From Cycas panzhihuaensis (lineage: Eukaryota; Plantae; Cycadophyta): DNA of 64,000 nucleotides. The stretch spans positions 216,325,741 through 216,389,740 of the forward strand of contig CM041465.1 in NCBI GenBank assembly GCA_023213395.1, read 5' to 3'. The notes beneath the pieces were generated by a model, which had not been told where the DNA came from, did no database searches, and was given only the letters and a program-made list of their open reading frames with translations. The position numbers were made by a program, and so were the translations under genes. Positions within the stretch are counted from its first letter, which is position 1, and each line of letters opens with the position of its first letter. This document shows, piece after piece, positions 12,920-64,000 of this stretch.

Positions 12920-13110
12920 GTAGATAGATGTTATTTTTTCATAAGAGAGTCTTTTCATTGATGGTCTAGTGTGGGCCTATTATTTTACTATTATATCTCT
13001 TGATTAGCTTCCCAACTTATAATGTGCTCTTGATGGAGCTCATCTAGCCATGAAGGTCAAGTAATTAATAATGTTGCATAACCTTCTTCTTTCAGACTTC
13101 TAGAAGAGTA

Positions 13111-13494
13111 TGGTAGGATACCACTCATTAATGATAATTGCACACCAATATAATAAGCAAATAACTCCAAAAGAGCACTTGTATTGCAATATCCTTCGAG
13201 GGGGCAACCTCCCAATTACATGCAAATAACAATGATATTCAAGATACCATACTCTAAGGATTACACAAATATATATATATATGTCTCTATGCTTACTACT
13301 CAACCGCCTCCTTATGCATGTGGGATATTACATGAATATATATAGTACTCAATGACCACTACACAACCTTCTACTTATGCACGTGGATATTAAGAAAAGG
13401 GAAGAAGTAGAAGAAATAAAGATATAAGAGAGAGAAGAAGTACAAGATATAAGAGAATATAAGAGAAGGTAAGTTAGGGGTTGGATCCTTAACA
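13111..13494 (-). repeat. 3' LTR of the chromovirus
   Basis: TG...CA termini; ~97% identical to 18740-19120 (12 substitutions and 2 indels counted by eye); adjacent PPT at 13495-13509. Confidence 0.95.
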
Positions 13495-13532
13495 AAGTCC
13501 CCCCCTTAAAAAAGCTTTGCCCTCAAAGCTTA

Positions 13533-16500
13533 GTGATCTCAAGGTGCTCTAGGACAAATTGTTCATTTTCCTAGGTTGCATCTTCTTGTGGAAGTTGTTT
13601 CCATTTGATGAGATACTTAATGATTTGTCTGGATCATAGATGTCGAATTCTTTGGTTGATGATACGTTCTAGAATGAGTTGAAATTGCCCCTCCTCATTT
13701 AATATAGGTAATTCTGTTTGAACTTGTACTTGTTACCCAATTACCTTCTTGAGACATGAAACATGAAAGACATTATGGATCCTTGGTAGTGGTGGTAAGT
13801 CCAAGGTATATGCAACTTCACCAATCTTCTTGAGAATTTTGTAAGGCCCATAAAATTGAGGTTGTAACTTATGTTACCCATTTTATTTGAGAGATTCCTG
13901 CTTATACAGTTGCAACCGTAAGTATACCTAATCACATGGTTAAAATACTCGTTCACTTCGCCCTTTATCTGCCCATTGTTTCATCTGATTTTGTGCAAGG
14001 TTCAAATTTTCCTTGAGTAGCTTAAGAATCTGTGTTGTTTGTTGGATGTGGTCTTATTTGCTTGAACCTTAGAACTAATTATGGTATAGTTTTTAAGTGT
14101 GGGTGGTTCATAGCCATATAATGCTTGGAACGGAGTCATTCCTGCTGATGCATGATAGGTTGTATTATACCACCATTCTGCTAAAGGAAGCTAATGATGC
14201 CACTTTGCCCACCTTATCTGAAGCATAACACCGAAGGTATCCTTCAAGGCACTTATTAACCACCTAGGTTTATCCATCTGTTTGTGGATGGTAGGCTGAG
14301 CTCATTATCAGTTTAGTACCAAGTAGATGGAAGAGTTACATCCGAAGTTCTTTGGTAAACTTGGGATCCCAATCACTGACTATACATTTGGGCATGCCAT
14401 GCAACCTGTGTATATCCTTTAAAAAGACCTCAACAATTTTCTTTGCCTTAACCACCAGTATAGCATCTTTTCCTTCTAACTTGGTTAGACCCACGATGAA
14501 GTCTATAGAAATTTCTTCCCATCGTTGATTTAGAATGGGAAGGGGTTACAACAATCTTAGAGACTTGACTATTTCTGTCTTATGTCGTTGACAAATTTCA
14601 TGAGGAAACATATCTCTTTACAACTCCTTTTTGTCTCTTCCAAAAGAAAGATTGTTTTAAGCAGTGGTATGTTCGTAGGAACCCCGAGTGACCTGCTGTT
14701 GGAGAGGCATGTGCATCATGTAAAATTTACTCCTTAAGGCTAGAGTGAGGGCATATATATACTTGATTCTTATACCAAAGAATATTTGAAGACCATGTAT
14801 AATGGGTTGAATGCCCTACTCTAGCTTGAAGGTATTGAATGATCTGCTTTGTAAAGGAGTCCTCATCCCATTCTTGCTTGGCGATTGCTATCCAAGAGGG
14901 ATTGACTATCGTGATAGAATATAGTGTAGAGCCTTCTTCCTTACGAGATAAAGCATCATCAACTATATTATCCTTGCCTTTTTTATATATTATTTCAAAG
15001 TCAAAAGCTTGCATTTTGGTGACCCATTTTTGTTGTTCCTCGGATCTTTGTCCTTTGAGATAGGAAATATTTTAAGCTATCATGGTCTATTTTAATTTGG
15101 AAATGTGTTCCCAATAAATATTATCACCATTTCCTAACTGCATGAAGAATTGCTAACATCTCCTTCTCATAGGTGGACTTGACTTGTTCCTTGAGTGTAA
15201 GTCGATGACTTTCAAAGGCCAAAGGTTTTCCTTCTTGTACTAAGATTGCTCCAATGCCTTGCCCTGATGCATCACATTCAATGGTGAAGGTCTTTGTAAA
15301 GTCTGGTGTTGCGAGGGCGGTGTGGTAGTTAAAGCCAGCTTTAGGTGTTCAAATGCTTAAGAGGCCTTATCATTCCAATGAAAAGAATCCTTTTTTAACA
15401 AATTGATTAAAGGGGAAGCAATCCTTGCATAGCCTTGAACAAACTTTTGATAATATCCTGTGATTCCTAAGAATCCACGAAGGCCCTTGATGTTTTTAGG
15501 TTTAGGCCAGTTTGCGATAACTGCTATTTTCTTAGGATTCACCTTGACTCCTTCTTGAGAGATGATATGGCCCAAATATTCTATTTCTGTTTGCCCAAAT
15601 TGACATTTTGATTTTTTTGCATAAAGCTAGTTGTTTGCAAGCACCTATAATGCCTTATCAACATGCTGAAGATGGTCTTCCCACATATGACTGAAGATCA
15701 AAATGTCATAAAAAAAGACTAATATGAACTTCCTTAAGTAAGGCTGAAAGAGTTTATTCATGAGTCTTTGAAAGGTGGATGGAGCATTAGCCAAGCCAAA
15801 TGGCATGACTAAAAATTCATAGTGACCTTCATGTGTACGAAATGCAGTTTTATGAACATCCTCTGCTTTGATCCTAATTTGATGGTTTCCTGACTGTAAG
15901 CCTAATGATGTGAAGAACATTGCTCCATAGAGTTCATCCAAGAGTTTATCAATGACTGGTATAGGAAATTTATCCTTAATGGTTATCTTATTGAGCTCGC
16001 GGTAGTCTACACACATGCAAAATGAGCCATCATTTTTTCTTACTAAAATCACCGGGATAGAAAAAGTGCTTTTACTTTTCCTAATAATACCAACATTAAG
16101 GAGTTCTTGAACTAGCCATTCAATTTTATTCTTTTGCTGGTAGGGATACTGGTATGGTCGAATACAAGGAGGATTACTTCCAACTACCAAGTCAATGTTA
16201 TGATCTTGGTGACATACTGGGGGAAAACCTTGAGGAATATCCTGAAAGACCTGGTTATGGTGGTGAAGTACCAATTTTAAGTCATTTGGTATACCATCAT
16301 CTTGGAGAATGTCCCCTTCTATTAGAAGTTCTTGACCTTCTAGAGCATAACATTTGGCAATGATTCCTGTACCATCCTTTTTAATAAGCCTCTCCATACG
16401 GTGTGAGCTGATGATTTGGGTCAGTAGAGAAATGATCCCATTCAATTGATAGTCAACTCCTTTAGAAGTAAATCGAATAAAGAACTCTTGCATATTTAGT

Positions 16501-17829
16501 TGAATGGTCCCTAGTGGTTTGAGCCATTGTACCCCTAATACAACATCAACTCCTCTAATAGGAATGGCATACATAGAAGTGGAGAGGTGATAATCACCCA
16601 TTTGCAACTTGATATTATGACATTTTCCCCCACAAGCAAGTGTCCCTCCATTAGCCACCATAACTTAAAAATTTTTGATAGGATATGGAAAACAGTTGAG
16701 TTCTTCAACAAGTTTTCGATTAATGAAATTGTGGGTGCTCCCAGAATCTATGAGGACAACCACCTTCCTTTTCTTAATGTACCCAATAAGTTTGAGTGTC
16801 TGAGGGGCTACAATTCCAATTAGGGCATGCACAGATATAGTAGCAGTATCTTCTTCTTCCTCCTCAAGTAGGTCACAATCATTATTTTCTGGCTCTAATG
16901 AGGCTTCTTTTATTAGTTCCTCATCTTGAACATCCTCAATTATAAATAAGCGTCGTTCATGACACTTGTGGTCTTTATTCCACTTTTGGTTACAATGAAA
17001 ACATAACCCTTTCAATCACTTCTCATCCATCTCTTGGGAAGTCATTCGTCGTACACCAGGAACTTGAAATTGTGGTCGCTTTTCTGGAAATGTTCATTGG
17101 GGGGGTCGGGATGCCTTATTTTTTGCTTCAATATGTCAAGCAAATTAATAGTTGTAGAGATGTTATCAGGTTTTAAGAGTCGCAGCTCATGTCTGATGTC
17201 ATCTCGTAACCCACCAATGTATAACTCAAGTAATTTATCTCGACAAAAACCATCAACCCTTGTGGAGAGATGTTGGTATTCTGCTGTATAAACTGAAACA
17301 GTCCCCTCCTGTCTAACTTTAGCTAACTGGTTAAAGTGGTCCTGATCCTAGGTACTATCATATTAAGCTATAAGATCCTTGACAAAACCCTCCCAATGAT
17401 AACTAAGCCCACCAATTGTTTTCATGACCCATTGGTACCATTGGTAGGGTTCAGTTTCCATGTGTAGAGAAGCAAGAGGGATCTTCTTATCTGCTGGAAC
17501 TTGATGAAGAGAAAAGTATTGTTCCATTTGGGTGATCCAGGTACATACATGCCATTGAACTTCTTGATTTCTACCTTGGGAAGGAAGTTTAGACGAAAGC
17601 GCCTACCATCATTACCTTCATCTTCTTTAGTGAAGTGATCCCCACCTATGTGAGTAGTATCATCAAGGTCACTCTTTTCTTCCTTAAGAGGTTTCATGGA
17701 TGTGAGCTCTAGTATTACTACTTCAAATTTTTCATTGAAGTCATTTTGGATTTGTAATATATCTTCTCAAAGTTGTGAAACAGCATCATTGAGATCTTGA
17801 GTCCAACTTGGGTTCATCTTAGGGACCAT
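13533..17829 (-). pseudogene. Chromovirus gag-pol (gag, Zn knuckle, protease, RT, RNase H, integrase, chromodomain), frameshifted
   Basis: KGLCFHCNQKWNKDHKC; VLIDSGSTHNFI; CVDYRELNK..KDKFPIP; FLVMPFGLANAPSTFQ; LRGFLGITGYY; FDFEIIYKKGKDNIV.DALSR; KYLIKWKQLPQEDAT*E (chromodomain, ~13545-13690). Confidence 0.92.
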
Positions 17830-18725
17830 TAGTCCACAAGACCTAAGTTGAAATCCTGGTTGGTAAATGTGACTGAAAAGGATTTGACGGGGTGTTTATA
17901 GACTGTTATCCCTAATATTTTATAATGAGACAATATGGATTTTTTTTTTTTTGCGTTTTTACTTTTTTACATTTTTGCTTTTTACTTTTTTGTTTTTTTT
18001 AGGCACTGGTTGGATGATAGACTATGTGTGCATGAATTGATGATAAACTAGTTAGAGACACTCGATTTAATAAATAGATGATGACTGACTCTCTGATCGA
18101 CTAAGTGCGCACAACCCACTAATAGACTAACCAGGTACACTAGGTATGGGCTTGTCTGGTTTGTAGGCCCTCCGATATACTTGTCCCAGACGTAAATAGT
18201 ATCAACTTACAGAGGGAAACACTCTAGTCTGTAATTGTACTACCCCATCTCTAGGGTACGTGGAGAGTAACTTCCCGGGGCTAATTGCTTACCGATGCAC
18301 TATAAATTGCAGGCAATCAATAGGCTTCCTATGGTTACCTATACTAGGAAGGCCTATCTAGGGGGTCCTCCTATATACCTGCAGGTACATTGAGGCACAA
18401 TTTCGTAGCTAAGTTATGTCTAAGGCTTGATTCAGGAGTGTGATCTCCAGTCCTTCATGCAAGGGATAGAAAATCCACAATACACTTAGCCCAAAACGAT
18501 AGATCCTCGTGATATTTATAGACCCCCGTCATAGGGTCTCTATCTAAATGTAAAAGAGAACTGCCCAGTGGTAGTGTTAAGGTAGCTGCTCGATGGCAAT
18601 ATTATCTACCCCTAAAAAGTAAAGTAACTAAATGGAAATCAAATGAGAATAGGTACTAATAAGAAAAAAAATGGAAAAAATTGATTATTTAGTACCTTGA
18701 CTCTCCCATAAGGAATGGATCGACT

Positions 18726-18737
18726 GCTCTAATACCA
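18726..18737 (-). other. PBS (tRNA-iMet type)
   Basis: The reverse complement is TGGTATTAGAGC, versus canonical TGGTATCAGAGC, 2 nt from the LTR. Confidence 0.9.
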
Positions 18738-18739
18738 CT

Positions 18740-19120
18740 TAGTAGGATATCACTCCTTAATGATAATTACACACTAATATAATAAGCAAATAACTCCAAA
18801 AGAGTACTTGTATTGTAATACCCTTCGAGAGGGCAACCTCCCAATTACATGCAAATAACAATGATATTCAAGATACCATACTCTAAGGATTACACAAATA
18901 TATATATGTCTCTATGCTTACTACTCAACTGCCTCCTTATGCATGTGGGATATTACATGAATATATATAGTACTCAATGACCACTACACAACCTTCTACT
19001 TATGCATGTGGGATATTAAGAAAAGGGAAGAAGTAGAAGAAATAAAGATATAAGAGAGAGAAGAAGTACAAGATATAAGAGAATATAAGAGAAGGTAAGT
19101 TAGGGGTTGGATCCCTAACA
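18740..19120 (-). repeat. 5' LTR of the chromovirus
   Basis: Direct repeat of 13111-13494, followed on + by TSD GAGTA. Confidence 0.95.
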
Positions 19121-22100
19121 GAGTACATCTATAATTATGTTCTCCTTTTGTTATTTATAGGTGATTTTAAAATCATAATCTTGTATCTTATTAACCCATT
19201 TTTACTATTCTTTGAAAAGGCTTGGTTATGATAGGATGTATTTCAAATTCTATTGATCTATTTTTATTATGAATCTACTACTAAGAATTATTTCCATTTC
19301 ATTAAGACATATAGGATTGCAAGTATTTCTTTATAATATGTGTTTTTTTCTCTCTCTTAAGTTTAGTTTTCTACTTTCATATGCAATTGGTTTATTTTAT
19401 TAAATTAATACCATGCCAATTCTCATTCCTAAAGCATTATATTCTACTTTAAATGTTTGAAAAAAAATTTAGTAAGGTGATTATGGATCTTATGGTTATT
19501 ACACTCTTGAGATTATTAAAGCTTTATTCTACTATATCATTCCATTTGAATTTGCTATTTTTATATATGTCGATGGGTGGCATTATTTTTGTAGTATTAC
19601 TTTCATAAACTTCCTACAATATCTTGTTAGACCTAAAGTCCTTATAGTTTTGAGATGGAATTTTGTATGGGCTACTCAATAATGGTGTGGGCTTTAAATA
19701 GGTTTATCCAAACTCCTTCTTATGATATTATGTGGCTAAATTATTCTAATTTTTGTCTCCTATAATTACATTTAAATCTCTTTGTATAAAATTAGTTACC
19801 TTTTACTATATGTACAACCTTCTCTAGGTGTACCATGTGATCTTTCCAAGTTTTGTTGTACACCATTATATCATCAAAGAAAACCATGTTGAATAAACTT
19901 AAGGATGGAGTGAATACTTGATTCATCATTACTTGAAATAACTTTGTTATTTTCTACATTGATATGATGAATGATTGTGGTGAATTGATCCCTAATAGCC
20001 ATTATAATTAGTTGTGAATGTAGAATTGAATGAAGTTCTTTAAGTGGTAGAGGGAGAAAGCACCTAACACTTTTAGCCACTTGAGTTTTAATACAACATC
20101 AAAAATACTAATGCTAAACACATAGAAATCTATGTAGAATGGTACCTTACTAAAGTAGAGTTATTTGTGTTTTATTAGACCATCATATAGAATTGAATGA
20201 CCACCCAATATTATTCTGTTGAATGCCTTGGACTCTTTTATGCACAAGCCAAGTCTCTTTATAACACCCATGTTGATAAAGTTATACATGCTTCCAAGAT
20301 CTATAAGTATCGATGATCATTGCTTCCTAATATATCTATATATCTTTATCATGTCTAGATTCTAGATATTTGATATTATTGCCATAGATACTTTTGGATG
20401 TCCATCATCCAAGGTTGAATTATTTAGCATTTAGTTATACCACTTATTATCAAAGATGTCTATTAGTGTATCCTCTTGATTGTTATCCATTCAAATAGTA
20501 TATATATAGAAACTCTTATAGGTTATACCCTAATTAAATAATATATAATATCAAATTAGTTCAAGCACTATGAAATATCATAAGATGGATGGACAAATAT
20601 ATTAATAATCATTCCAATTATGCATTCAAAAGAGAAGCATAATAATATAGAAATTATTTTAAAATGAGATATATTTATTCTCAAGTTATAATTTTTTTAA
20701 TATAATACTACTCCAAGTTATAGCCCTCTTCAAGGGCAAGGGAACCTCTAAATGTTGTGTAACTAAATGCTTAAGCCAAACACATCCAAACATAATATGA
20801 TATGAGATTACATATATAAGTAGTTATAATACTAACCCCCTAAGAGACTTCTTCCATAAGATCTACTCAAGATTAGCTTCACTCATAATTACACAACATT
20901 AGCTTCATCTATAGTTACATCATTATTCATACACTTACAACTTGTGCCTCCTTGTATAATCACAGTTATTCTTAAGATGCCTAATGCTAGGTATGTAATA
21001 ATATACTTTTTTCTTTTATGAGAAGACAAGTCTTTATCTTCCTCCCACTTTTAATTATAGTCATAGTAGAGTCGTTGTGCTCTCTATCTTACTTTTCTTA
21101 GGTCTTCCCTCTTGCTAGTATATTTAATATTAAGGGCTATGTGGATGAGTGATTACTATATTGATAGACTATTCTTTAACTATTCGGTTGCATAAATGTT
21201 AGTGTCCTTTATTTTGTAATTTATTTGGCTTAATTTATTAACTAACCAAATATGGTCTAACATGTTAAATGGATAGCATTTTTCAGTGTGCTAAGGTTGA
21301 ATTATCATATATCCTCACAAATTTGGGCATGTAGATTGTTTATATAGAATGGTAGATCCTCCTTGGATTTGGTTTGTCCTTGCTTTGTAGTTTTTCAAAT
21401 ACTTTTGTATATTACTATACTAATCTATATTTGTGAAAATAATAGTCTAGCTAAGCATAATATGGATTGATCTAGATTTCTTTGGTTTCTTCTTTAAAAG
21501 TAACTCTAATTTTTTGAAAATTTCTATCGTAGGATGTTCTTGCTTCAAGTACATAGCCTATAGGTACATCAATCTCATTAAGTGCTTACTAGAAAATGTG
21601 ATTTCATCAGGGACATTGATAACTCCAAGTGTTTTAAAGAAGTTTGTGATCTTTATTAGCCATTCATTTACATCTATATCTCTGATTAGTAAGTAAGTTA
21701 GAAGTTTTACATTATGATGAATATTCTGTTGTTATTAATTGTCTAAATTTTTCCAGTCATTTGTTTCCTTTTGATGGTGATTGGTATCTTACTAGATAAT
21801 GTCTTTCTATATTATCTTGATCTCGTTAATAGTAGTTTCTAAGCTCCTTATCTTATCTTCTATTTTACTTATATAGTCTCCCAACTTAGTTGGGTAAACT
21901 TGAGGCATTTTTATCCTTTTCCTATACTCTACTATAGTGGGTTTTTTTGTTCTTAAGAGAAGCCAATACCCTTTATCATCACAGATGTAATTGCCTCATT
22001 GAGATACTTTATTAGTAGTTTGATGTTTGGAGGGTATTAAGCACCTTGACTACTAAAGTATATGTTCTATTTTGATCAAGCCTACTAACTACCTTAGTCA

Positions 22101-23869
22101 ATTAGTCAGCTCCAAGAGGGTACAAAGTTAATTTAGTTTTAACAACTACTAGGCCAAGTTTGTAAGAACAACTAGAATGGAATCAAGTTTACTATAAAAT
22201 AGAAGGTTAATTAAAGAAAGAAATGGAAAAAAAAATAAAAGAAATGCAATACTTTGAATTGAAAAGAGTAAATATTAAAGGAAAGAGTCTTTCAAAAATG
22301 TAACAAATTTATGAAAATGACTTTACTAAAGGTGGAAAAATGAATAGAGAATATTTTATAATATTTTATTTTAAATATTCCTTAAATTTTCTAATCTTAA
22401 ATTTTTAAAGAAACCTCACATAGAATAAAAATTCAGGTTGAGTGTCCTATTCAACATTTGTGTCCATTGTTGTGTGAGGCTTTGAATTAGTCTTGCATAC
22501 TCTTTATGAATCCTCCAAGTAGCATCAAAGTAGAGGTTTGAAGTGAGGGGGAGGGGAGGGTGTTTGAGACCTATATGATGGGATCATGCTAGGGGCACAC
22601 AAGATGTGGGGCCATTTAAGAATTGGGCTATCTTGCAAACTATAGATCAACTTGGAAACAAATAGACACTAATGCCAATAAATTTAAAGTTGATATCCTT
22701 AGTGGTATAATAGGATAAAGAGCATATATAAGCTAAGAAAACATGCTAAAGAGGAGAATTTACTAAGACTATTAAGGCAATAATAGAAATAAAAGTACTT
22801 AAAAGTCAAAGAAGAATGTGTTTTGGCTTTTGGCACACCACATAGGTAGAATGGGTAGAAGGGACTATTGGCTTTAAGAATGAAATGAGAGAAAGAATAA
22901 TGGTGCCAACAATGTCAAGATATTAAAAAAAAATGGTGCCAAGAATGTGCTCATCTTGATAAGCACCCATGATTATGAAAAATAATGGACATAAACCATT
23001 GCTCTAAAGTAATAAAAAACTACTTCAATACCACTTATAGCATACTCTTGGGATGGTAGTACATAAACTACTAAAAAATAGTTATTTGGTAAAAAATACT
23101 AATAATAATTTCATGAAAGAAAATATGAAACATGCTCCACCAGGGCACAACCTAAAGACTAGAAAACTTTAAATTAAAATGCTTAGATGATTCCTAGATA
23201 ACTCATAACATTCCTTTTATTTGGGCATTTTTGGGGCAGCCTATTTTGATACATGAAAATTAACCTAATTTATGGTAAGTTATCATGTAAATGGCTTAGT
23301 GTTGTGGCTTAGGTGCACAATAATTTTGGGGCCCTTTTGTTGCATTTATTTAGCATCAAATTTACATTTTGATACGTCAATTTTATAGATATAAAGAGTT
23401 AAGAACATGATTTATGTCGATATAATGCTTTATTGCTTATTTACACTTGGGTATGTTATATTTTCTTAATTTCTTATAAAGTCTTCATTTACATTTATTT
23501 TATTTTTCCTTTGACATGGATGTGAGGTATTCTTCTTACATTAGAAATCTCCCTAAACCACCTAGCTTATAAACCATCCTCTATAAACATTAGTGAACTT
23601 CCACTCCATCATCATGTTTCCCATAAGATGTTGCCATTCTTTTCAAGCAACATTTTCCTACTTATTTAGAAAATTTAGAGGGTTGTTGCCACTTTCATAT
23701 ATTCCACCCATCCTAATCGCTACGATGGTCATTCAGCCTATTTTCACCTCTTTATCGTTCTTCCAAGTAAAAAAAATTAAAACTTTTAACATTAATGCCT
23801 AAAAACCCTGTCAAGTTGGACTTGGCTTGGATAAGAGATTCTACCAAAATGACCAAAGGACGCCCGTAG

Positions 23870-24504
23870 GTTTCGTAGAGCCAAGAACGTGCAGGTAACG
23901 TGCGGGCTTTGTACACGTAAGAAGCGATTCCCCAAACGGTTCCCGTTGAAACTACGGAACCGTTTTTCCTGTGAATCCTGCCGCGCGCCGCGTGTTTAAT
24001 GCCGAGCGTCACCCCCCTTGCGTTCACGCTTATCACCCAATCGTTTTCGTCCACGTCGGATTCCACCACGCCCTCGACCGGATGCCTGTCGACAACGCCC
24101 GCGTCATTGAACATAACGTCTGCGTGTCCGTGGATTTTGACGGCCACGTCAACCGTTGGACTGACGACCCCTTTACTCACGTCACAAAGCACGTTTGTGG
24201 CCGAATTGACGCCAAGCGCTTCGCAGAGCTTCTTACCAGCGGATTCATCGGCGATATCTGCGAGTTTGACCTTCGCTCCGTGTTCTGCAGAGAGCCGAGC
24301 GGTGGCTTCTCCTACGCCTCTGGTCCCGCCTGTTACTACTGCAATTTGTCTTCCAATCTGCCAACAAGATGCGCCAGCGTTAAGTACAGCAGTAAGCAAT
24401 GAATCATAGAATCGGACAGTTTAGAGGAAGAACTCGTGTTACCCTTCTCTTAGCTCCGACGGTAGCATGCTCTGCAGCCGTGGTTTGGTTAGGGACTGTG
24501 ACAT
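23870..24504 (-). pseudogene. Short-chain dehydrogenase/reductase pseudogene (plant SDR group including SDR2a, TASSELSEED2 and ABA2-like enzymes); 2 exons, frameshifted and 3'-truncated
   Basis: ATG at 24504; GT-AG intron at 24358-24442 in phase 2 before LEDK (the usual RLEGKVA position). A 1-nt loss follows (AAA TTG CAG TAG). Motifs AVVTGGTRGVG, CDVS, MFNDAGV and VNARGVTLGIKHAAR..GSVVST are present. The catalytic YxxxK is degraded (SYVYKART) and the C-terminal part is absent. Confidence 0.88.
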
Positions 24505-35420: not shown

Positions 35421-36439
35421 GTGTATATATATGTATATCAAATAATTGGAAAATAAATCAAAGTATCATTCTCTGTTGAGAAAACTTGAGTGTCCTTGTT
35501 ATTATTTTGTCACATTCTTGTGACCTTCTAGCATTCATCTTTCTAAATAACAACTACAACTAGTAGCAGATCACTGTAAGTGGTATTAAATTTATTCAAT
35601 ATTTGGGCACTACAATAAGAATCAGGAAACAATCTAATTATTATAATCACTCTACCTTCACTCATCCATTTTCCATTGCCATATTTTTTAGCATTTCCTA
35701 TATGCCCCTCCTTATCATTTCCACTTTACCCATCAACCTCAATAGACCCACCTTCACTCTACCGAACACCACACCTCCTAATTCTTAGCTATCATTGGCT
35801 TACTCCTTCTGTTAATCTCTTACCATCTATATTTCCTTCCTCCTTTCCCTTCATTTCCCTAAACCCTTACATCTCTTCATTTATATTTTCAAGTTATTCT
35901 CCTCCTGATGCTATCTCCTAATCCCTACTTACCTATCTACTTCTCCTTGCGTATTGTTCAAGTTTCCCTCTTGTCAATACTATATTCGAACCTCTACTCA
36001 CCTCTCCTTATTCCTCCTACTATATGACATGGATCTATACCATGTACATTGCTCTTGACTATTTTATTATTGCACATCCAATGTTGACTAACCTTACTTA
36101 GTGAACAAAAAAAAAAAAAAAACGAAACCCAATTTTATGGTTTAGTCAAAATGATAATATTTTTACTAAGAGAATATTCTTTCCCTTTCAAATTTAAAAC
36201 TCTCATGCAAAAATTAACATAAATTGTAACTTCCTTTAAATTATAAACTACATGATCTATAAGACCTCTCCATATCTACCTTAACTACTTCTCTAATTTA
36301 CTATTTTTTGATTCACGTGCATTAGAGAAAGAGGTCATTCATTTGCCTTATGTAAAATGAGTATACTCTTGCTATAATCATAATCAAATGACCTCCATTC
36401 CATATAGTGCCAAAGAAACTCATGATATTAGATGTTAAA

Positions 36440-36480
<41 letters not shown>

Positions 36481-37070
36481 GGTATGTATAATAGTAAAGT
36501 AAAATATAAGAAAAGATTAAGAATGACTACCAAGGAAAATATCAGCAACAATGTTAACATTTGCCTAAACTTATTGAATAATGTATTAAAAGGATTAATA
36601 ATAAATTATTAACCTTTATAGATTCTAATGCTAAAATATTGTATTTTCCATTAAATAATAATGACAACAATTTACTTCATTTAGTATAAAAATATCTTAT
36701 TATTCCTAATTTTAGAATGAAGGGATTAATGGACATAGATGAATGAATTACAAAGTTAACATTAGTAATTTGGAACATCTCTATTACTAATGAAAATAAC
36801 AAAACCCAATTTTCTACCAATCACTTATAAGGGCATATTTACATTTGAGTATAAAAATGGTACATAAGTTATAGGTTTGTATATCACACTAACCTTGTTA
36901 ATGACCTTTGTGAATATATCGAAGGCCCTAACTTGGTCTTATATAAGTCACAACTCTCTCACTACTTCTAACAAGATTCCTCTATAGAGTTCACTAAGGA
37001 GGTTGCCTAATGAAGAAGTTGTATAATTTGCTAGGGTAACATCCATCTTAATATTATCATTGAGGTTATA
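35421..37070 (+). mobile_element. Fragment (LTR end, PBS, leader, gag start) of the same gypsy family as 57400-61600
   Basis: Collinear similarity to 57400-59050 and to the LTR end at 61430-61600; PBS-like TGGTATTAAA at 35581. Confidence 0.8.
36443..36474. repeat. (TC)16 microsatellite
   Basis: Direct reading; absent from the paralogous position at ~58420. Confidence 0.95.
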
Positions 37071-57399: not shown

Positions 57400-60300
57400 A
57401 TTTTATATGTATGTTTTCTAAATCATTAGAAAACATATCAAAGATTAATTAAAATACTATTCTTTGTTGAGAAAACTTGGTTTTCCTTGATTTTCTTATT
57501 ATTATTTTATTGTGTTATGATGACCTTCTAGCATTTATCTTTTTGAATAACAACTATAACTAGTAGTAGATCATAAGAAGTTGTATTAGATTTATTCAAT
57601 CTTTAGGCATTGAAATAAGAATAGGTAAGAATCTAATTATTATAATCATTCTACCTTCAATGGTCTATTTTTCATTATCACCTCTTTTAACATTGCTTAA
57701 AAGCTCCTCCCCACCATTCACACTCTTATTATCAACCTCAATAAACCCACCTTTACTCTACTAGTCATCACATCTCCTAATTCTCAATTAGTGCTATCTT
57801 CCTCCTTACATTCATCTATTATCATCTACATTTCCTTCCTCCTTTCCTTTCCTTTCCCCAAACCCTCACATCTCTTCATTTGTATTTTTGAGTTATTCTC
57901 CTCCTAATGTTATTTCTTAATCCCTACTTAATTATCTATATCTCATTATCCATCGTTTGAGACATCATCCTCTCGACACCATATTCAAATCCCTACTCAC
58001 CTCTCCTTCTTCCTGCTACTATATTACATGGCCCTATCCTGTATACATCATCCTTAACTATTTTGTCACTACATCTACAACGTTGACTAATCCCACCTAG
58101 TGAACCACAAAAATAAAAAGTTGCCTAATTTTACGGTTTTATCAAAATGATGATATCATTTTCAAATTTAAAAATCTCCCACAAAAATTAACACAAATTA
58201 CCACTTCCTTTAAATTCTAAATCACATGTTATACAAGACCCCTCCTCACCTACCTCAACTTCTACTTTGATTTACTAATTTTTTAATTCTTGTTCATCAA
58301 AGAAAGAGCTTATTCATTTGCCTTATGTGAAATAAATACACTCTTGCTAAAATCATAATCACTCGATCTCTACTCTACATGTACTTACTAAAGAAACTCG
58401 TGATATTAGAGGTTAGAGCCCCAATTCAAAATAAAAAGGCTAGTAAAGTAGACTATAAGAAAAGACCAAGAATGGCTACCAAAGAAGACATCAACAACAA
58501 CCTCAACATTCATCTAAACTTTCTTGAAGAATCCAATAAACAAATTGATAATAAATTATTGACTCTTATAGATTCTAAAGCTAAAATACCACATCTCCCA
58601 TTCAATGAAAGCGACAATAATGGACCAATTTAGTATAAAAAGTTATCTTATCATTTCTGACTTTAGCATCAAGGGACCAATGGATATAAATGAATGGATT
58701 GCAAAGTTGACAATAGCAATTTGAGACATCTTATCACGAATGAAAATGAGAAAACTAGATTTTCTATCAATCATTTGGAGGGGTATATTTACATATGAGT
58801 ATACAAATCGTACAAAGGTCATAGGTTTGCATTATGCATTGACTTTGTCAATGACCTCTATAAATGTATTGAAGGCCCTAACTTGGCCCCACATAAGCTA
58901 CAGTTCCCTCACTGCTTCCAACATGATTCCTTTATAGAGTTCATTAAATATTTTGAGAAACTTCATCTCAAAATAGATGCGCCCAATAAAAAAGTTGCAC
59001 AATTTAACTAGGTCAACCTCCATTTTGATATTGGCATTCAGGATATAATGCTTTAATCAAGCTTCCCTCACTGCTTCCAACATGATTCCTTTATAGAGTT
59101 CATTAAATATTTTGAGAAACTTCATCTCAAAATAGATGCGCCCAATAAAAAAGTTGCACAATTTAACTAGGTCAACCTCCATTTTGATATTGGCATTTAG
59201 GATATAATGCTTCAATCAAGCTCATTAGTTGATGTCATCACTTTGGCAACACAGGAAGAAACCAAACTTAAAATTTAGGCACCCCACTATATTTTACCAG
59301 CCTAATGGCTTGCCTTTAGCCCTTGGCCTAAGAAGAGTGATAATTACTTTTTGTGTACAGACAATTGGTTTTTGAGTTATAAAAATATGTGTTCAAAATG
59401 GTAGTGACCTATGTAGTTGAGTAAGAATTCAATGATGAAAATTGAAACATTATTAATGACTAATAATGCATTGAATAAATGTAACCAATATCTCTTTAGG
59501 ATGGGCATTTAACTATTTCACTAGTGACCATATTAGGTTTCCAACAACTTAATACTATCAAATTATGTGGATTTTTATGAAAGGGAAAAGTCATTACTCT
59601 AATAGACCTAGGTAGCATACATAACTTCATTGACATAAATTTCACCCTAAGATTAGGTTTTTTTATTAACAAGACCAAGACCTTTCTTATATTAATGCCC
59701 AAATAATGACATATTATATGTGATAGTGAAATTCCATACCAACAACTTTAAACTAGGACCCTTATATTTTTAACTATATATTGTGCCTTCTCCATTGGCA
59801 CTATGGATGTTGTAGTAGGTGTTGAATGGCTCGAGGAGTTAGGCAACTATAGACTAAACCACAAGGAAATTTTCATATAATTCCAATGGAACAAGAAGAT
59901 TTACTAATTGTTAGGAATTACTCTATTGAAATCTAAGATTATTCCAACCACGAAGTTGAATAAGCTTTTTAGCAAAAGGCATGCTAGTTTTATTATCCAT
60001 CTATACTCCATAGAGGCTTAGACTAGATGAGGAAAAACTATAAGAGGACCAACAATAGGAGCTTCAAAATCTCCTTCAGTGGCATCGTAAAGTCTTCTAG
60101 TTGATTCCTATAGTACGTTCACTAGATCATGGAATGAAATCTGTCAACTAACTATATAGGTTTTCTCAAATAATTATTAGCAACCAAGATCTAAAGTTCA
60201 TTGAAACCTATTTGCACTATTTTATGGGGGATAAATAGTCTTGATGGTATACCTAATAGAATACTATTACAATGCTTCTTATTATGCCATAATAAAATGT

Positions 60301-61600
60301 CTGCATTCCTCACCCTATACAAGTATCCTCTGCTAGCTACTCATAAAATTTTCCATTCTTCATCCAAAGCCCTAGAAGTAGAGAAACTTTAGTAGTAGAC
60401 TGACAATATCTTATTATCCCTCAAAGATAATCTTAAATATATTCATAATTAAATGAAGAAACAAGTAGATCAACATCAATTTGAACACCAATTTGCCAAA
60501 GGTGATTAGGTTTTTATTTAATTACAACCTTATGAGTAATCTTCACTTAAGCATTTGGGCAAACAAAAAGTTATCTAAAGGTTTTATAATCCATTTAAGG
60601 TTTTAAAATTCATTGGTTCTCTTTCTTATACCCTTGCCATTTATGGTGCCAAAATCCATAATATCTTGTATATCTTTAGCCTCAAGTTGAAGGTTGGGTC
60701 ACATGTCACTCTAAAAATAAAACTTTTAGTTTTTAACGGATGAAGGCCAACTAGTCATCAATCTCTAAGACATCTTGGATACTTATAGCAAATAATTTCA
60801 TACAAAGACTAATAAAGCATACTTGATTAAATAGAAGGGTTTGCTAAAGGATGATGTAATAGGGAAACATGAAGTCATTCTACTATAGTTTATGAACCTT
60901 CCTATACTTTAAGGGAAAAGTATTTAAAAAATATGAGGATATATTATGACTCTCCCAATCCATGCTAATAAGTTAAACTAATAGGACCAAAATTGTAATA
61001 ATTTAAATAAATACCCAAATAGCATTAGGTGCTAAAGGATGGGAAACATCAATAGTTATACCACATAACTGCCTCAACCATGGGGCCTAACTACTAGAAC
61101 TCTAACATATCACGTGGGACCTAATTAACAGTGTTAGGTAATTGTTAGTAAGATATTTACCACATGGCATTTATCTATGAGGGATCACCTACCCTCATTA
61201 TATGGCAATCATGCAAGGGGGCTCCTTTTATATTTGTAGGGCCTTATACTGCATTTAAAGGTACTACAGTACCATCTTTTATTATCTTAACATATACCCA
61301 ACTAATTGGTGATTAATAATAAATTTATCTATCAATTTCTTTATTTGAATCCTCTTTGATCAATTATATGGTAATATTTATAATAATATATAGGGAAAGT
61401 TTATCATACATTGTGTAAACTCATGTATATATATATGTTTTTAGAATCACTAGAAAGCATATTAACGAATAATCAAAGTATTATTCTCTATTAAGAAGAC
61501 TCAAGTTTCACTAGTTTCCTGTTATTATTTTCTTGTACTCTTATGACCTTCTAGCATTCATTTTCCCAAATAACTACTATAATTAGTAGCAAATCATAGA
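57400..61600 (+). mobile_element. Chromovirus-type gypsy element lacking RT and RNase H (gag, PR, INT C-terminus, chromodomain)
   Basis: The LTR end at ~57400-57577 is repeated at ~61430-61600, with PBS-like TTGTATTAGA. Motifs: MATKEDIN (gag), LIDLGSIHNFID ~59600, DVVVGVEWLEELG ~59810, INT C-terminus 60200-60700, YLIK*KGFAK chromodomain ~60820. The 3' LTR starts at ~60942. Confidence 0.75.
58904..59221 (+). repeat. 159-bp tandem duplication (2 copies, 2 mismatches)
   Basis: ttccctcactgcttccaacatg...aatcaagc at 58904-59062 and 59063-59221. Confidence 0.95.
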
Positions 61601-62134
61601 TAGAGGAGACACTGTCTATCCCAAGTCACAACATAGCAAAGTGGATCCATGAGCAACTACATTAAACTATTGAATAAGGCATGAAATGGTAGCACTATTT
61701 GATCACTACTTACTTGAAATATAATATGTATATGTAGGCTATATGTATGTGGGTATTTTATTAGTAATTTAATTAGTAGTGTATTTTTCATTAATTATTC
61801 CTTGATACACAACTTTGGTTTGGACATCCATTGGGACATTGGGTGGATTTAAGGCACCTTCCAAATGTTTATTCCTCAACCAAGGGTCTTTTAGTAATAT
61901 TTCAAGGTTATTATTAATTTACAAAGAGTAGATCTACTCTACAAGTCACTAAAAACCCTTAGATTTGAGTTCAAATAATCATGGGAGTCGAAAACCCTTC
62001 ATGTGGGCTGTGTAGGCCATGATAATGCTATGGAAATAAATAGTTAATAAAATATATTTATTGTATTATTTAAGCTTTTATTTTTTTTACTGTATCTGAT
62101 GTTGATGGGTTCTAGTTAGTGAATCTATCGTTAC

Positions 62135-62602
62135 TATTACATGGCTAATCTTGCAACCAATCAATATAGAGAAATATGAAGAGACATGAAATAAATAAGA
62201 TAAAGAAGAAAGAAGGGTTCTAAAGAACATCATATCATATCATATCATCCTTATCATCATTATAATAGAGTGGCGTATATATAACCCTCACCCCTTCATT
62301 ATTATATTCCTACCTTTATGTCCACCAATCCTCTTAATCCCCATATAATGGAGGGTCAAAACCCTCTCTAAAGGGTTATGACCCTCTATCATATGGGGAT
62401 TAAGAGGATTGGTGGACATAAAGGTAGGAATATAATAATGAGAGGGTGAGTGTTATATATACGCCACTTTATTGTAATGATGATAAGGATGATATGATAT
62501 GATATGATGTTCTTTAGAACCCTTCTTTCTTCTTTATCTTATTTATTCCATGTCTCTTTATATTTCTCTATATTGATTGGTTACATGATTAGCCATATAA
62601 TA
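62135..62602. repeat. 468-bp near-perfect palindrome (2 x 234 bp, essentially no spacer) occupying a 5' LTR position
   Basis: 62135-62368 is the reverse complement of 62369-62602, with ~15 mismatches and no indels; it is followed by AG and TGGTATCAGAGC. Confidence 0.95.
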
Positions 62603-62604
62603 AG

Positions 62605-62616
62605 TGGTATCAGAGC
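62605..62616 (+). other. Perfect tRNA-iMet PBS
   Basis: TGGTATCAGAGC, 2 nt after the palindrome end. Confidence 0.92.
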
Positions 62617-64000
62617 TAAGGAAAGGGCAATTTTTTTTCTTATTTCATCTTTATTTATTGCAAGTATTGAAGACATAACCCTATTGGAAGATTGGAAGTC
62701 CTATTGAAGGGTTTATAGGGCTAAATATCCTACATATAGTTAAGAGTAAATACCCTAGTAAGAATTTTTTCACCATGCTACTAAGTATTTAGTGTTCATG
62801 CAAGGAGTAGTTCTATAATGTGAAGATCCCTCAACTTGCATGTGTATAAAATTATTGTGAGATTCTATTATGTTGCACCTATTAAGCTACTATTTAATCA
62901 TTAACATTAACTACTTGAGAGATTAGTATGCTAACCACTAGAGATTGCATCATTCCATGTGAAGATGTCATATCTGTTAGAACTCTTTTTAGAGATCTGT
63001 CTATGCCACTTACAATCATTACCTGAGGGAAATTCATTGACCTTGAAGAAGCCAAGCATCATTTTTATATCTTTTATATATAAAATCTATCCCATGGAAA
63101 GCCCTCACTACAACATCTTCACTAATTCACCATTTCTTGTTTATGAATAAGGGTTTTGTCAAGGAACAAGTCAGTGATCCATTCTCCTATGTGTGATCGT
63201 ATATTAATCCACCTATATTTCTGATAATGATGGTATCCATTATGGTTTTTCTCCTACATTGATTGCTTATAGAACATTTGTAATGCCTACTTCTCAACGC
63301 ACCACATCACAAGAACACCAAGCTATACCTATTCTAAACATGTCCTTAGAGCTCTTGCCTCAAATCTGTGGGCTTATGAGCACCTATGGAGGAATTAACT
63401 TAACTACATTGTGATATGAAAACTACCCTATGAAGAAGTTTTTACTCACTAAGTGCTTAAGAGAATTATTCTATCAGAATAGTATAAAGTCCACACTATC
63501 ATAAGAGTACAAAGTCTATTGAAATAATAGAAAGGAATTTTGGCCAAAGATTTCATGGAGTAGAGATGTTGACGTTAACGCTATTGAAGGAAAGTCATGA
63601 GAATGATCGCTCCTCCTATTCACTGTACATTGACACCTTGTATAATTTCTCTAAGCCAACGATAACCTTAAGCCAGTGATCGAGCTCACTTGGATCTCAT
63701 TTAAAGAACATAGAATAGTAGCTCAAAGATTATGGGCATAGAAACCCTAATGGTAGCGGCTACTTAGGGTAATTTAAGAAAAATATTTTATTATTTTTAC
63801 AATACTAAAATTTAATTGGAATTGAGTCTCATATCTGCTAGCCCCCTCTCTAGCTTAGCGACTACCACATGGAACATTCAAGGTGACCTAGTTTTTAAAA
63901 GGGAGTTTAATAAAATTTTTATACCTATTCTCACTATTTCATCTATATCTCTTTTATACAAATTTGGAATTCAGTTATGTCAAATCTATTGGGTTTCTTA

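Follow-up and report, generated by a model that had tools for sequence, protein, structure and literature searches.

In HIV-1, minus-strand strong-stop DNA can prime its own extension at a hairpin in R, a TAR-dependent and well-established side reaction that nucleocapsid normally suppresses (PMC4668388 and PMC3098202, which cite Guo et al. 1997 and Driscoll and Hughes 2000). The Mu killer locus of maize, as summarized in PMC11624286 from Slotkin et al. 2005, is a natural inverted duplication of the 5' part of a transposon. For EVD of Arabidopsis, LTR hairpins arising from head-to-head, tail-to-tail or nested arrangements have been proposed as a trigger of silencing, and were sought without success (PMC11624286). 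In maize, the LTRs of Sirevirus elements each hold several palindromes of ~17 nt, which are GC-rich, lie in U3 and are conserved across thousands of copies (PMC4728375).

Here we describe a palindrome of 468 bp in a stretch of DNA from Cycas panzhihuaensis (hereafter the window, which is the whole 64-kb stretch that was analysed). Our favoured reading, of moderate confidence, is that reverse transcription went astray on a single occasion and that its product was integrated ~2-4 My ago. If this is so, it would resemble the HIV-1 reaction in several respects: the intermediate would be complementary to R-U5 and have the tRNA junction at its 5' end, its 3' end would fold on the R hairpin, and the predicted product would be an inverted R-U5 followed by R-U5. 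The HIV-1 case, however, is an in vitro or abortive event in an animal retrovirus, whereas the palindrome described here would be a completed, integrated, heritable plant copy whose mechanism we infer from its anatomy. Like Mu killer, it would be a natural inverted duplication of the 5' part of a transposon that, if transcribed, could give a hairpin RNA able to silence its family in trans. By contrast, and going by the summary in PMC11624286, Mu killer derives from a DNA transposon by DNA rearrangement, owes its transcription to a promoter in the flank and has been proven genetically to act, whereas our locus is known from its sequence.

The LTR hairpins sought for EVD and the palindrome described here both place two LTR sequences in opposite orientation, and both could give rise to LTR-directed small RNAs, but the EVD hairpins are pairs of whole LTRs set kilobases apart by nested insertion, whereas here there is no spacer, the boundary lies at the LTR end, and each arm is probably only part of an LTR. 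The Sirevirus palindromes also make LTR sequence able to fold into hairpins, and in Sirevirus this has been linked to small-RNA targeting (PMC4728375). In contrast to them, the palindrome here is single, has arms of 234 nt, is AT-rich (31% GC) and has been seen once. A further parallel is the 5' inversion of L1 by twin priming, which is likewise a one-off inverted structure at a 5' end made by abnormal priming of reverse transcription; L1, however, is a non-LTR element that relies on target-primed synthesis, and the result is an inversion rather than an inverted duplication. The palindrome joins known kinds of sequence, namely aberrant retroelement copies and transposon-derived inverted duplications.

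An earlier note on this DNA had reported two arms of 234 bp with ~15 mismatches, mostly transitions, and no indels. A base-by-base mirror comparison around 62368/62369 reproduced this description: the arms (62135-62368 and 62369-62602) are non-complementary at 15 positions, comprising 11 transitions and 4 transversions, and differ by no indels. Beyond 62135 and 62602, almost all mirrored positions mismatch and the symmetry collapses. A repeat search returned arms of 231 nt that are 94% complementary and separated by a 6-nt spacer (Table 1), and it found the palindrome to be the sole long inverted repeat within the 64-kb window. The self-complementary TATATATA is found in each arm, ~87 nt away from the centre. 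At its inner end the right arm reads TAAAGGG..., which does not match, in inverted form, the ...ATAATA at its outer end. The earlier note had also proposed that the sequence be folded. As RNA, the palindrome forms one hairpin at -363 kcal/mol, as compared with -108 +/- 6 kcal/mol for shuffles (z = -43.7). In a DNA fold, a 3'-terminal hairpin forms at the centre with its 3' end paired; because every palindrome would have such a small central hairpin, we do not treat it as independent evidence.

Table 1. Features of the palindrome, its flanks and the control element, in window coordinates.
Feature	Position	Strand	Description
Host flank GTTAC	62130-62134	.	Candidate half of a 5-bp target-site duplication, with the partner beyond the window
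Left arm	62135-62365	-	Inverted copy of the 231-234 nt preceding the primer-binding site
Left arm, outer end			U5-type terminus with primer site absent beyond it (mirror comparison)
6-bp stem AACCCT/AGGGTT	62360-62365 and 62372-62377		Flanks the central 6-nt loop
Non-palindromic centre CTCTAA	62366-62371	.	Proposed snap-back point
Right arm	62372-62602	+	3' portion of the 5' LTR, normally oriented (proposed as R-U5); ends ...ATAATA
AG dinucleotide	62603-62604	+	Between LTR end and primer-binding site
Primer-binding site TGGTATCAGAGC	62605-62616	+	Sole exact match in the window
Downstream sequence	62617-64000	+	Runs off the window; no coding sign
Intact LTR retrotransposon, 6,010 bp	13111-19120 (with flanks 13106-19125)	-	Internal control
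Control LTRs	13111-13494 and 18740-19120		95-98% alike; termini TGTTAGG...CCTACCA
Control pol ORF	15645-16661	-	RVT_1-type

The sequence TGGTATCAGAGC pairs with the 3'-terminal bases of the initiator tRNA-Met of plants and is the standard plant primer-binding site for this tRNA. It lies 2 nt past the end of the symmetry, which is within the 0-5 nt between LTR end and primer site that characterizes an LTR retrotransposon. Primer-site matches with up to one mismatch would be expected by chance ~0.2 times in the window. The order given in the earlier note, in which the end of the symmetry is followed after 2 nt by an initiator tRNA-Met primer site, is what we found, with AG as the two nucleotides and an exact primer site behind them. 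The window also contains an intact LTR retrotransposon that serves as an internal control; it is flanked by a target duplication of 5 bp (TACTC) and possesses a polypurine tract. Its 5' LTR end is followed by AG (18738-18739) and then by the primer site TGGTATTAGAGC. Judged by sequence features, 62602/62603 is a genuine LTR/primer-site junction, because the intact control element has this same layout of LTR end, AG and primer site. The retrotransposon context that had been claimed for the palindrome stands on these two observations, the exact primer site at 2 nt and the layout shared with an intact element of the window. An initiator-Met primer site is no proof of copia, because the control element that carries the same site has an RVT_1-type pol; such a site is not specific to Ty1/copia, and a copia assignment of the palindrome element is unproven. 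Members of Ty1/copia are recognized by an RVT_2-type pol in which integrase precedes reverse transcriptase, and the window holds no pol belonging to the palindrome element.

The left arm shows no such junction. Consistent with what had been noted before, the mirror comparison found no copy of the primer site in the left flank. A decayed mirrored primer site was considered and rejected, as only 4 of 12 positions match, which is far more decay than the 6% seen between the arms. The two outer ends themselves read TA...TA at mirrored positions, rather than the TG...CA of a typical LTR terminus. Integrases normally need TG...CA termini, and non-canonical LTR ends exist as a minority. The suggestion that the ends are decayed TG...CA is the less likely one, since both ends read TA at mirrored positions and decay would require two parallel mutations; the ends were therefore likelier already TA when the palindrome formed. 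Two other placements of the LTR limits, a start at TGTTGATGGG (62100) and an end at CCA (62596), were also rejected, as in each case the terminal inverted match was absent and the spacer too long. GTTAC, for which we sought a target-site duplication partner, is absent from 62617-64000. Straight after the primer site lies a 10-nt purine run, AAGGAAAGGG (62618-62627), which is polypurine-tract-like and has no LTR-like sequence after it. One T inserted in this run would lengthen the tRNA match by four bases.

The sequence that follows the primer site extends for 1.38 kb before the window ends, and all three of its frames are full of stops. When the 10 ORFs after the primer site were searched against Pfam at E<=1, no gag or pol was found in this available 1.38 kb; nine of the ten had no Pfam family at that threshold, and the remaining one (62504-62707) gave a weak match to YMF19_C (E 0.016), which was below the cut-off and was rejected as a chance-level, unrelated match. 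The stretch from 62617 to 64000 could belong to a non-autonomous or decayed element, as its leader or its interior, or it could be unrelated DNA. No arm-like or 3' LTR sequence was detected in it. In the 64-kb window as a whole, no second copy of the palindrome or of an arm was found by blastn with words of 7, 9 and 11 or by local alignment. A protein word search with a 67-aa ORF that runs across LTR, primer site and leader returned no candidate, a 25-mer from the arm had no match in viral contigs, and a pattern made of the LTR end and primer site had none in metagenome contigs. When a 20-mer of the arm was compared with metagenome contigs, the sole match (CXWL01015368.1, 7233-7252) fell within a bacterial coding region, and we set it aside as an unrelated chance match.

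The window is AT-rich plant DNA (35% G+C) packed with nested LTR retrotransposons. At 58904-59222, a 159-bp unit is duplicated in tandem in perfect register with 99% identity; this duplication is part of a large LTR-like repeat, which occurs at 35450-36997 as well. The segment at 61428-61598, 0.5-0.7 kb to the left of the palindrome, is 77-82% like the start of the large repeat (57404-57575 and 35489-35573). The palindrome-bearing element probably sits in or beside an older, decayed LTR. Elsewhere in the window, an ORF on the minus strand (23752-24399) encodes a short-chain dehydrogenase domain (adh_short, E 1.7e-16) and is apparently the exon of a host gene amid the retrotransposons.

The differences between the arms carry a record of their history. 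All 11 transitions fall at CHH cytosines, and the G/C state at these sites is found in the left arm seven times and in the right arm four times. In an RNA of the + strand, the transitions yield 5 G:U and 6 A:C pairs, and pairing within the hairpin is therefore not under selection on either strand. Because there are no indels among the 13-15 substitutions and the decay looks neutral, the arms were probably identical at formation and have since decayed independently and neutrally. The Jukes-Cantor distance between them is ~0.059. Plant substitution rates in common use range from 1.3e-8 to 7e-9 per site per year, which together with this distance places the age of the palindrome at roughly 2-4 My. 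The palindrome is real and old and is not an assembly artefact, as the earlier note had maintained; the arms are 6% divergent, with mostly transitions and a neutral-looking pattern of decay.

Minus-strand strong-stop DNA is the complement of R-U5, and its 5' end is joined to the tRNA primer. In the self-priming reading that we favour, such a DNA would have failed to make the usual jump to the RNA's 3' end. Its own 3' end would have snapped back on a small terminal hairpin at the start of R (AACCCT, a 6-nt loop and AGGGTT) and primed synthesis on itself. Extension would then have copied R-U5 in sense, followed by the 3' end of the tRNA, thereby recreating the primer-binding site. The self-primed molecule could act like plus-strand strong-stop DNA, with its primer-site tail annealing to a full-length minus strand that had been synthesized on the co-packaged RNA, after which synthesis would be completed. 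In the linear DNA produced in this way, the normal 5' LTR would be replaced by an inverted R-U5, the loop, R-U5 and the primer site, in this order. It would have two U5 ends, and integrase would process both of them, trimming 2 nt from each. A copy of this kind would lack U3 and so would have no promoter of its own; it would have been dead on arrival and would have decayed neutrally ever since. Under the normal rules by which reverse transcription regenerates LTRs, a 5' LTR of this make-up cannot be inherited by further copies.

Self-priming would account for the anatomy at several points. The symmetry would stop 2 nt before the primer site because integrase trims 2 nt per end, and the mirrored primer site would be missing because the tRNA primer at the left end is RNA and is removed. 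The boundary of the left arm would be base-exact at the LTR end because the 5' end of minus-strand DNA lies at that junction. A non-palindromic 6-nt loop between 6-bp stems is the form that a snap-back would be expected to leave, whereas replication of a hairpin-capped break would give a perfect centre. Finally, the inner end of the right arm has no inverted match to its outer end, which suggests that the arm is unlike a complete LTR such as that of the control element. The earlier note had left two readings side by side, a family in which the complete LTR forms a hairpin and a one-off in which the 3' part of an LTR was duplicated by folding back; no second copy came to light for the former, and the latter fits the anatomy better.

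Some observations count against the favoured reading. The TA...TA termini differ from the TG...CA that integrases normally need. There is no gag in the 1.38 kb after the primer site, and a full element downstream is only assumed. The equation of the arm with R-U5, and of the centre with the start of transcription, would have to be drawn from a single copy, and the presence of TATATATA in each arm means that the arm could hold a promoter and so exceed R-U5. To our knowledge, integrated self-primed products have been documented in vitro and not as genomic copies.

Alternatively, the whole LTR could be a 468-bp palindrome as a family trait, present at both ends of every member. The termini would then be trivially inverted, and TATA motifs would face both ways. 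We consider this unlikely. The outer ends of the palindrome do behave as LTR ends, with a primer site 2 nt past the right one and none past the left, so the boundaries suit this reading no less than the favoured one, and the self-complementary TATATATA in each arm is also consistent with a family of this form. However, we know of no LTR family with a fully palindromic LTR, and no second copy was found in the window, in viral or metagenome contigs or by the protein word search. U3 and R-U5 differ in their job, so a lasting family should turn asymmetric, whereas the lack of indels and the neutral-looking mismatches imply that the palindrome must predate the insertion only shortly. Each transcript of such a family would moreover carry, or pair into, long double-stranded RNA, which would attract silencing. 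No described LTR family of such form was found; the nearest is Sirevirus, with its short palindromes (PMC4728375). The palindrome does not resemble a Sirevirus-type LTR, in that it has no short repeated palindromes but one long AT-rich one.

A smaller chance still attaches to two head-to-head insertions of one family, in which an inverted solo LTR would have an element at its U3 end, or the reverse. Nested and clustered insertions are common in the window, and plant LTR hairpins have been discussed as possible products of LTR pairs lying head to head (PMC11624286). For this arrangement to produce the present structure, however, integration must have struck within ~6 nt of an LTR terminus. Nor does the left arm have a target-site duplication (GTTAC on its left, CTCTA/TAAAG at the centre), and at their inner ends the arms do not show the inverted terminal match expected of a complete LTR.

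A fold-back at the DNA level after integration, in which break repair or a replication template switch inverted and duplicated part of an ordinary 5' LTR, is in our judgement very improbable. Snap-back repair typically leaves a centre like this one, in which a spacer separates the halves of a short inverted repeat, but the outer boundaries of such an event should be arbitrary, and here they are base-exact at the LTR end, a coincidence that we estimate at ~1 in 100. Least credible of all are an assembly artefact and a fold-back or MITE-type DNA transposon whose terminal inverted repeats would measure 231 bp and whose adjacent primer motif would be due to chance; to such a transposon the palindrome is similar in shape alone. 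The flanks GTTAC and AGTGG are unmatched and form no target-site duplication, the right flank is the primer site, chance is very unlikely to have put an exact 12-mer primer site at the canonical distance of 2 nt, and palindromes made by assembly are near-perfect, whereas these arms are 6% different, mostly by transitions.

Were transcription to enter the locus from outside, the product would be a hairpin RNA of 234 bp directed against the leader of its own family. The bidirectional promoter, self-encoded siRNA or proto-MIRNA suggested in the earlier note would be hypothetical. A search of Rfam returned no match at the gathering score. Eight unrelated miRNA families appeared at E<=1, with 36-50 bits as compared with gathering scores of 63-171, and we rejected them as generic matches to a hairpin shape. 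A hammerhead ribozyme, which would be the criterion for a retrozyme, had no Rfam match even at E<=1.

As a single, old and decayed copy, the palindrome is a curiosity and not a functional element. If the family-trait reading were true for a family that is active or was so until recently, each copy would hold two cruciform-prone, two-way promoters, and each transcript would have a long built-in hairpin. If the favoured reading of self-primed reverse transcription is true, the locus would be a genomic fossil of a side reaction known mainly from retroviral test-tube work, and it would mean that, in a plant, strong-stop DNA that has primed itself can go on to be completed, to integrate and to be inherited. 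The locus would in addition be a natural example, without a spacer, of the "LTR hairpin" that has been proposed as a first trigger of small-RNA silencing of LTR families (PMC11624286). A genome-wide tally of R-U5 palindromes would gauge the rate at which reverse transcription fails in this way, and would reveal whether such copies mark the families that were silenced later.
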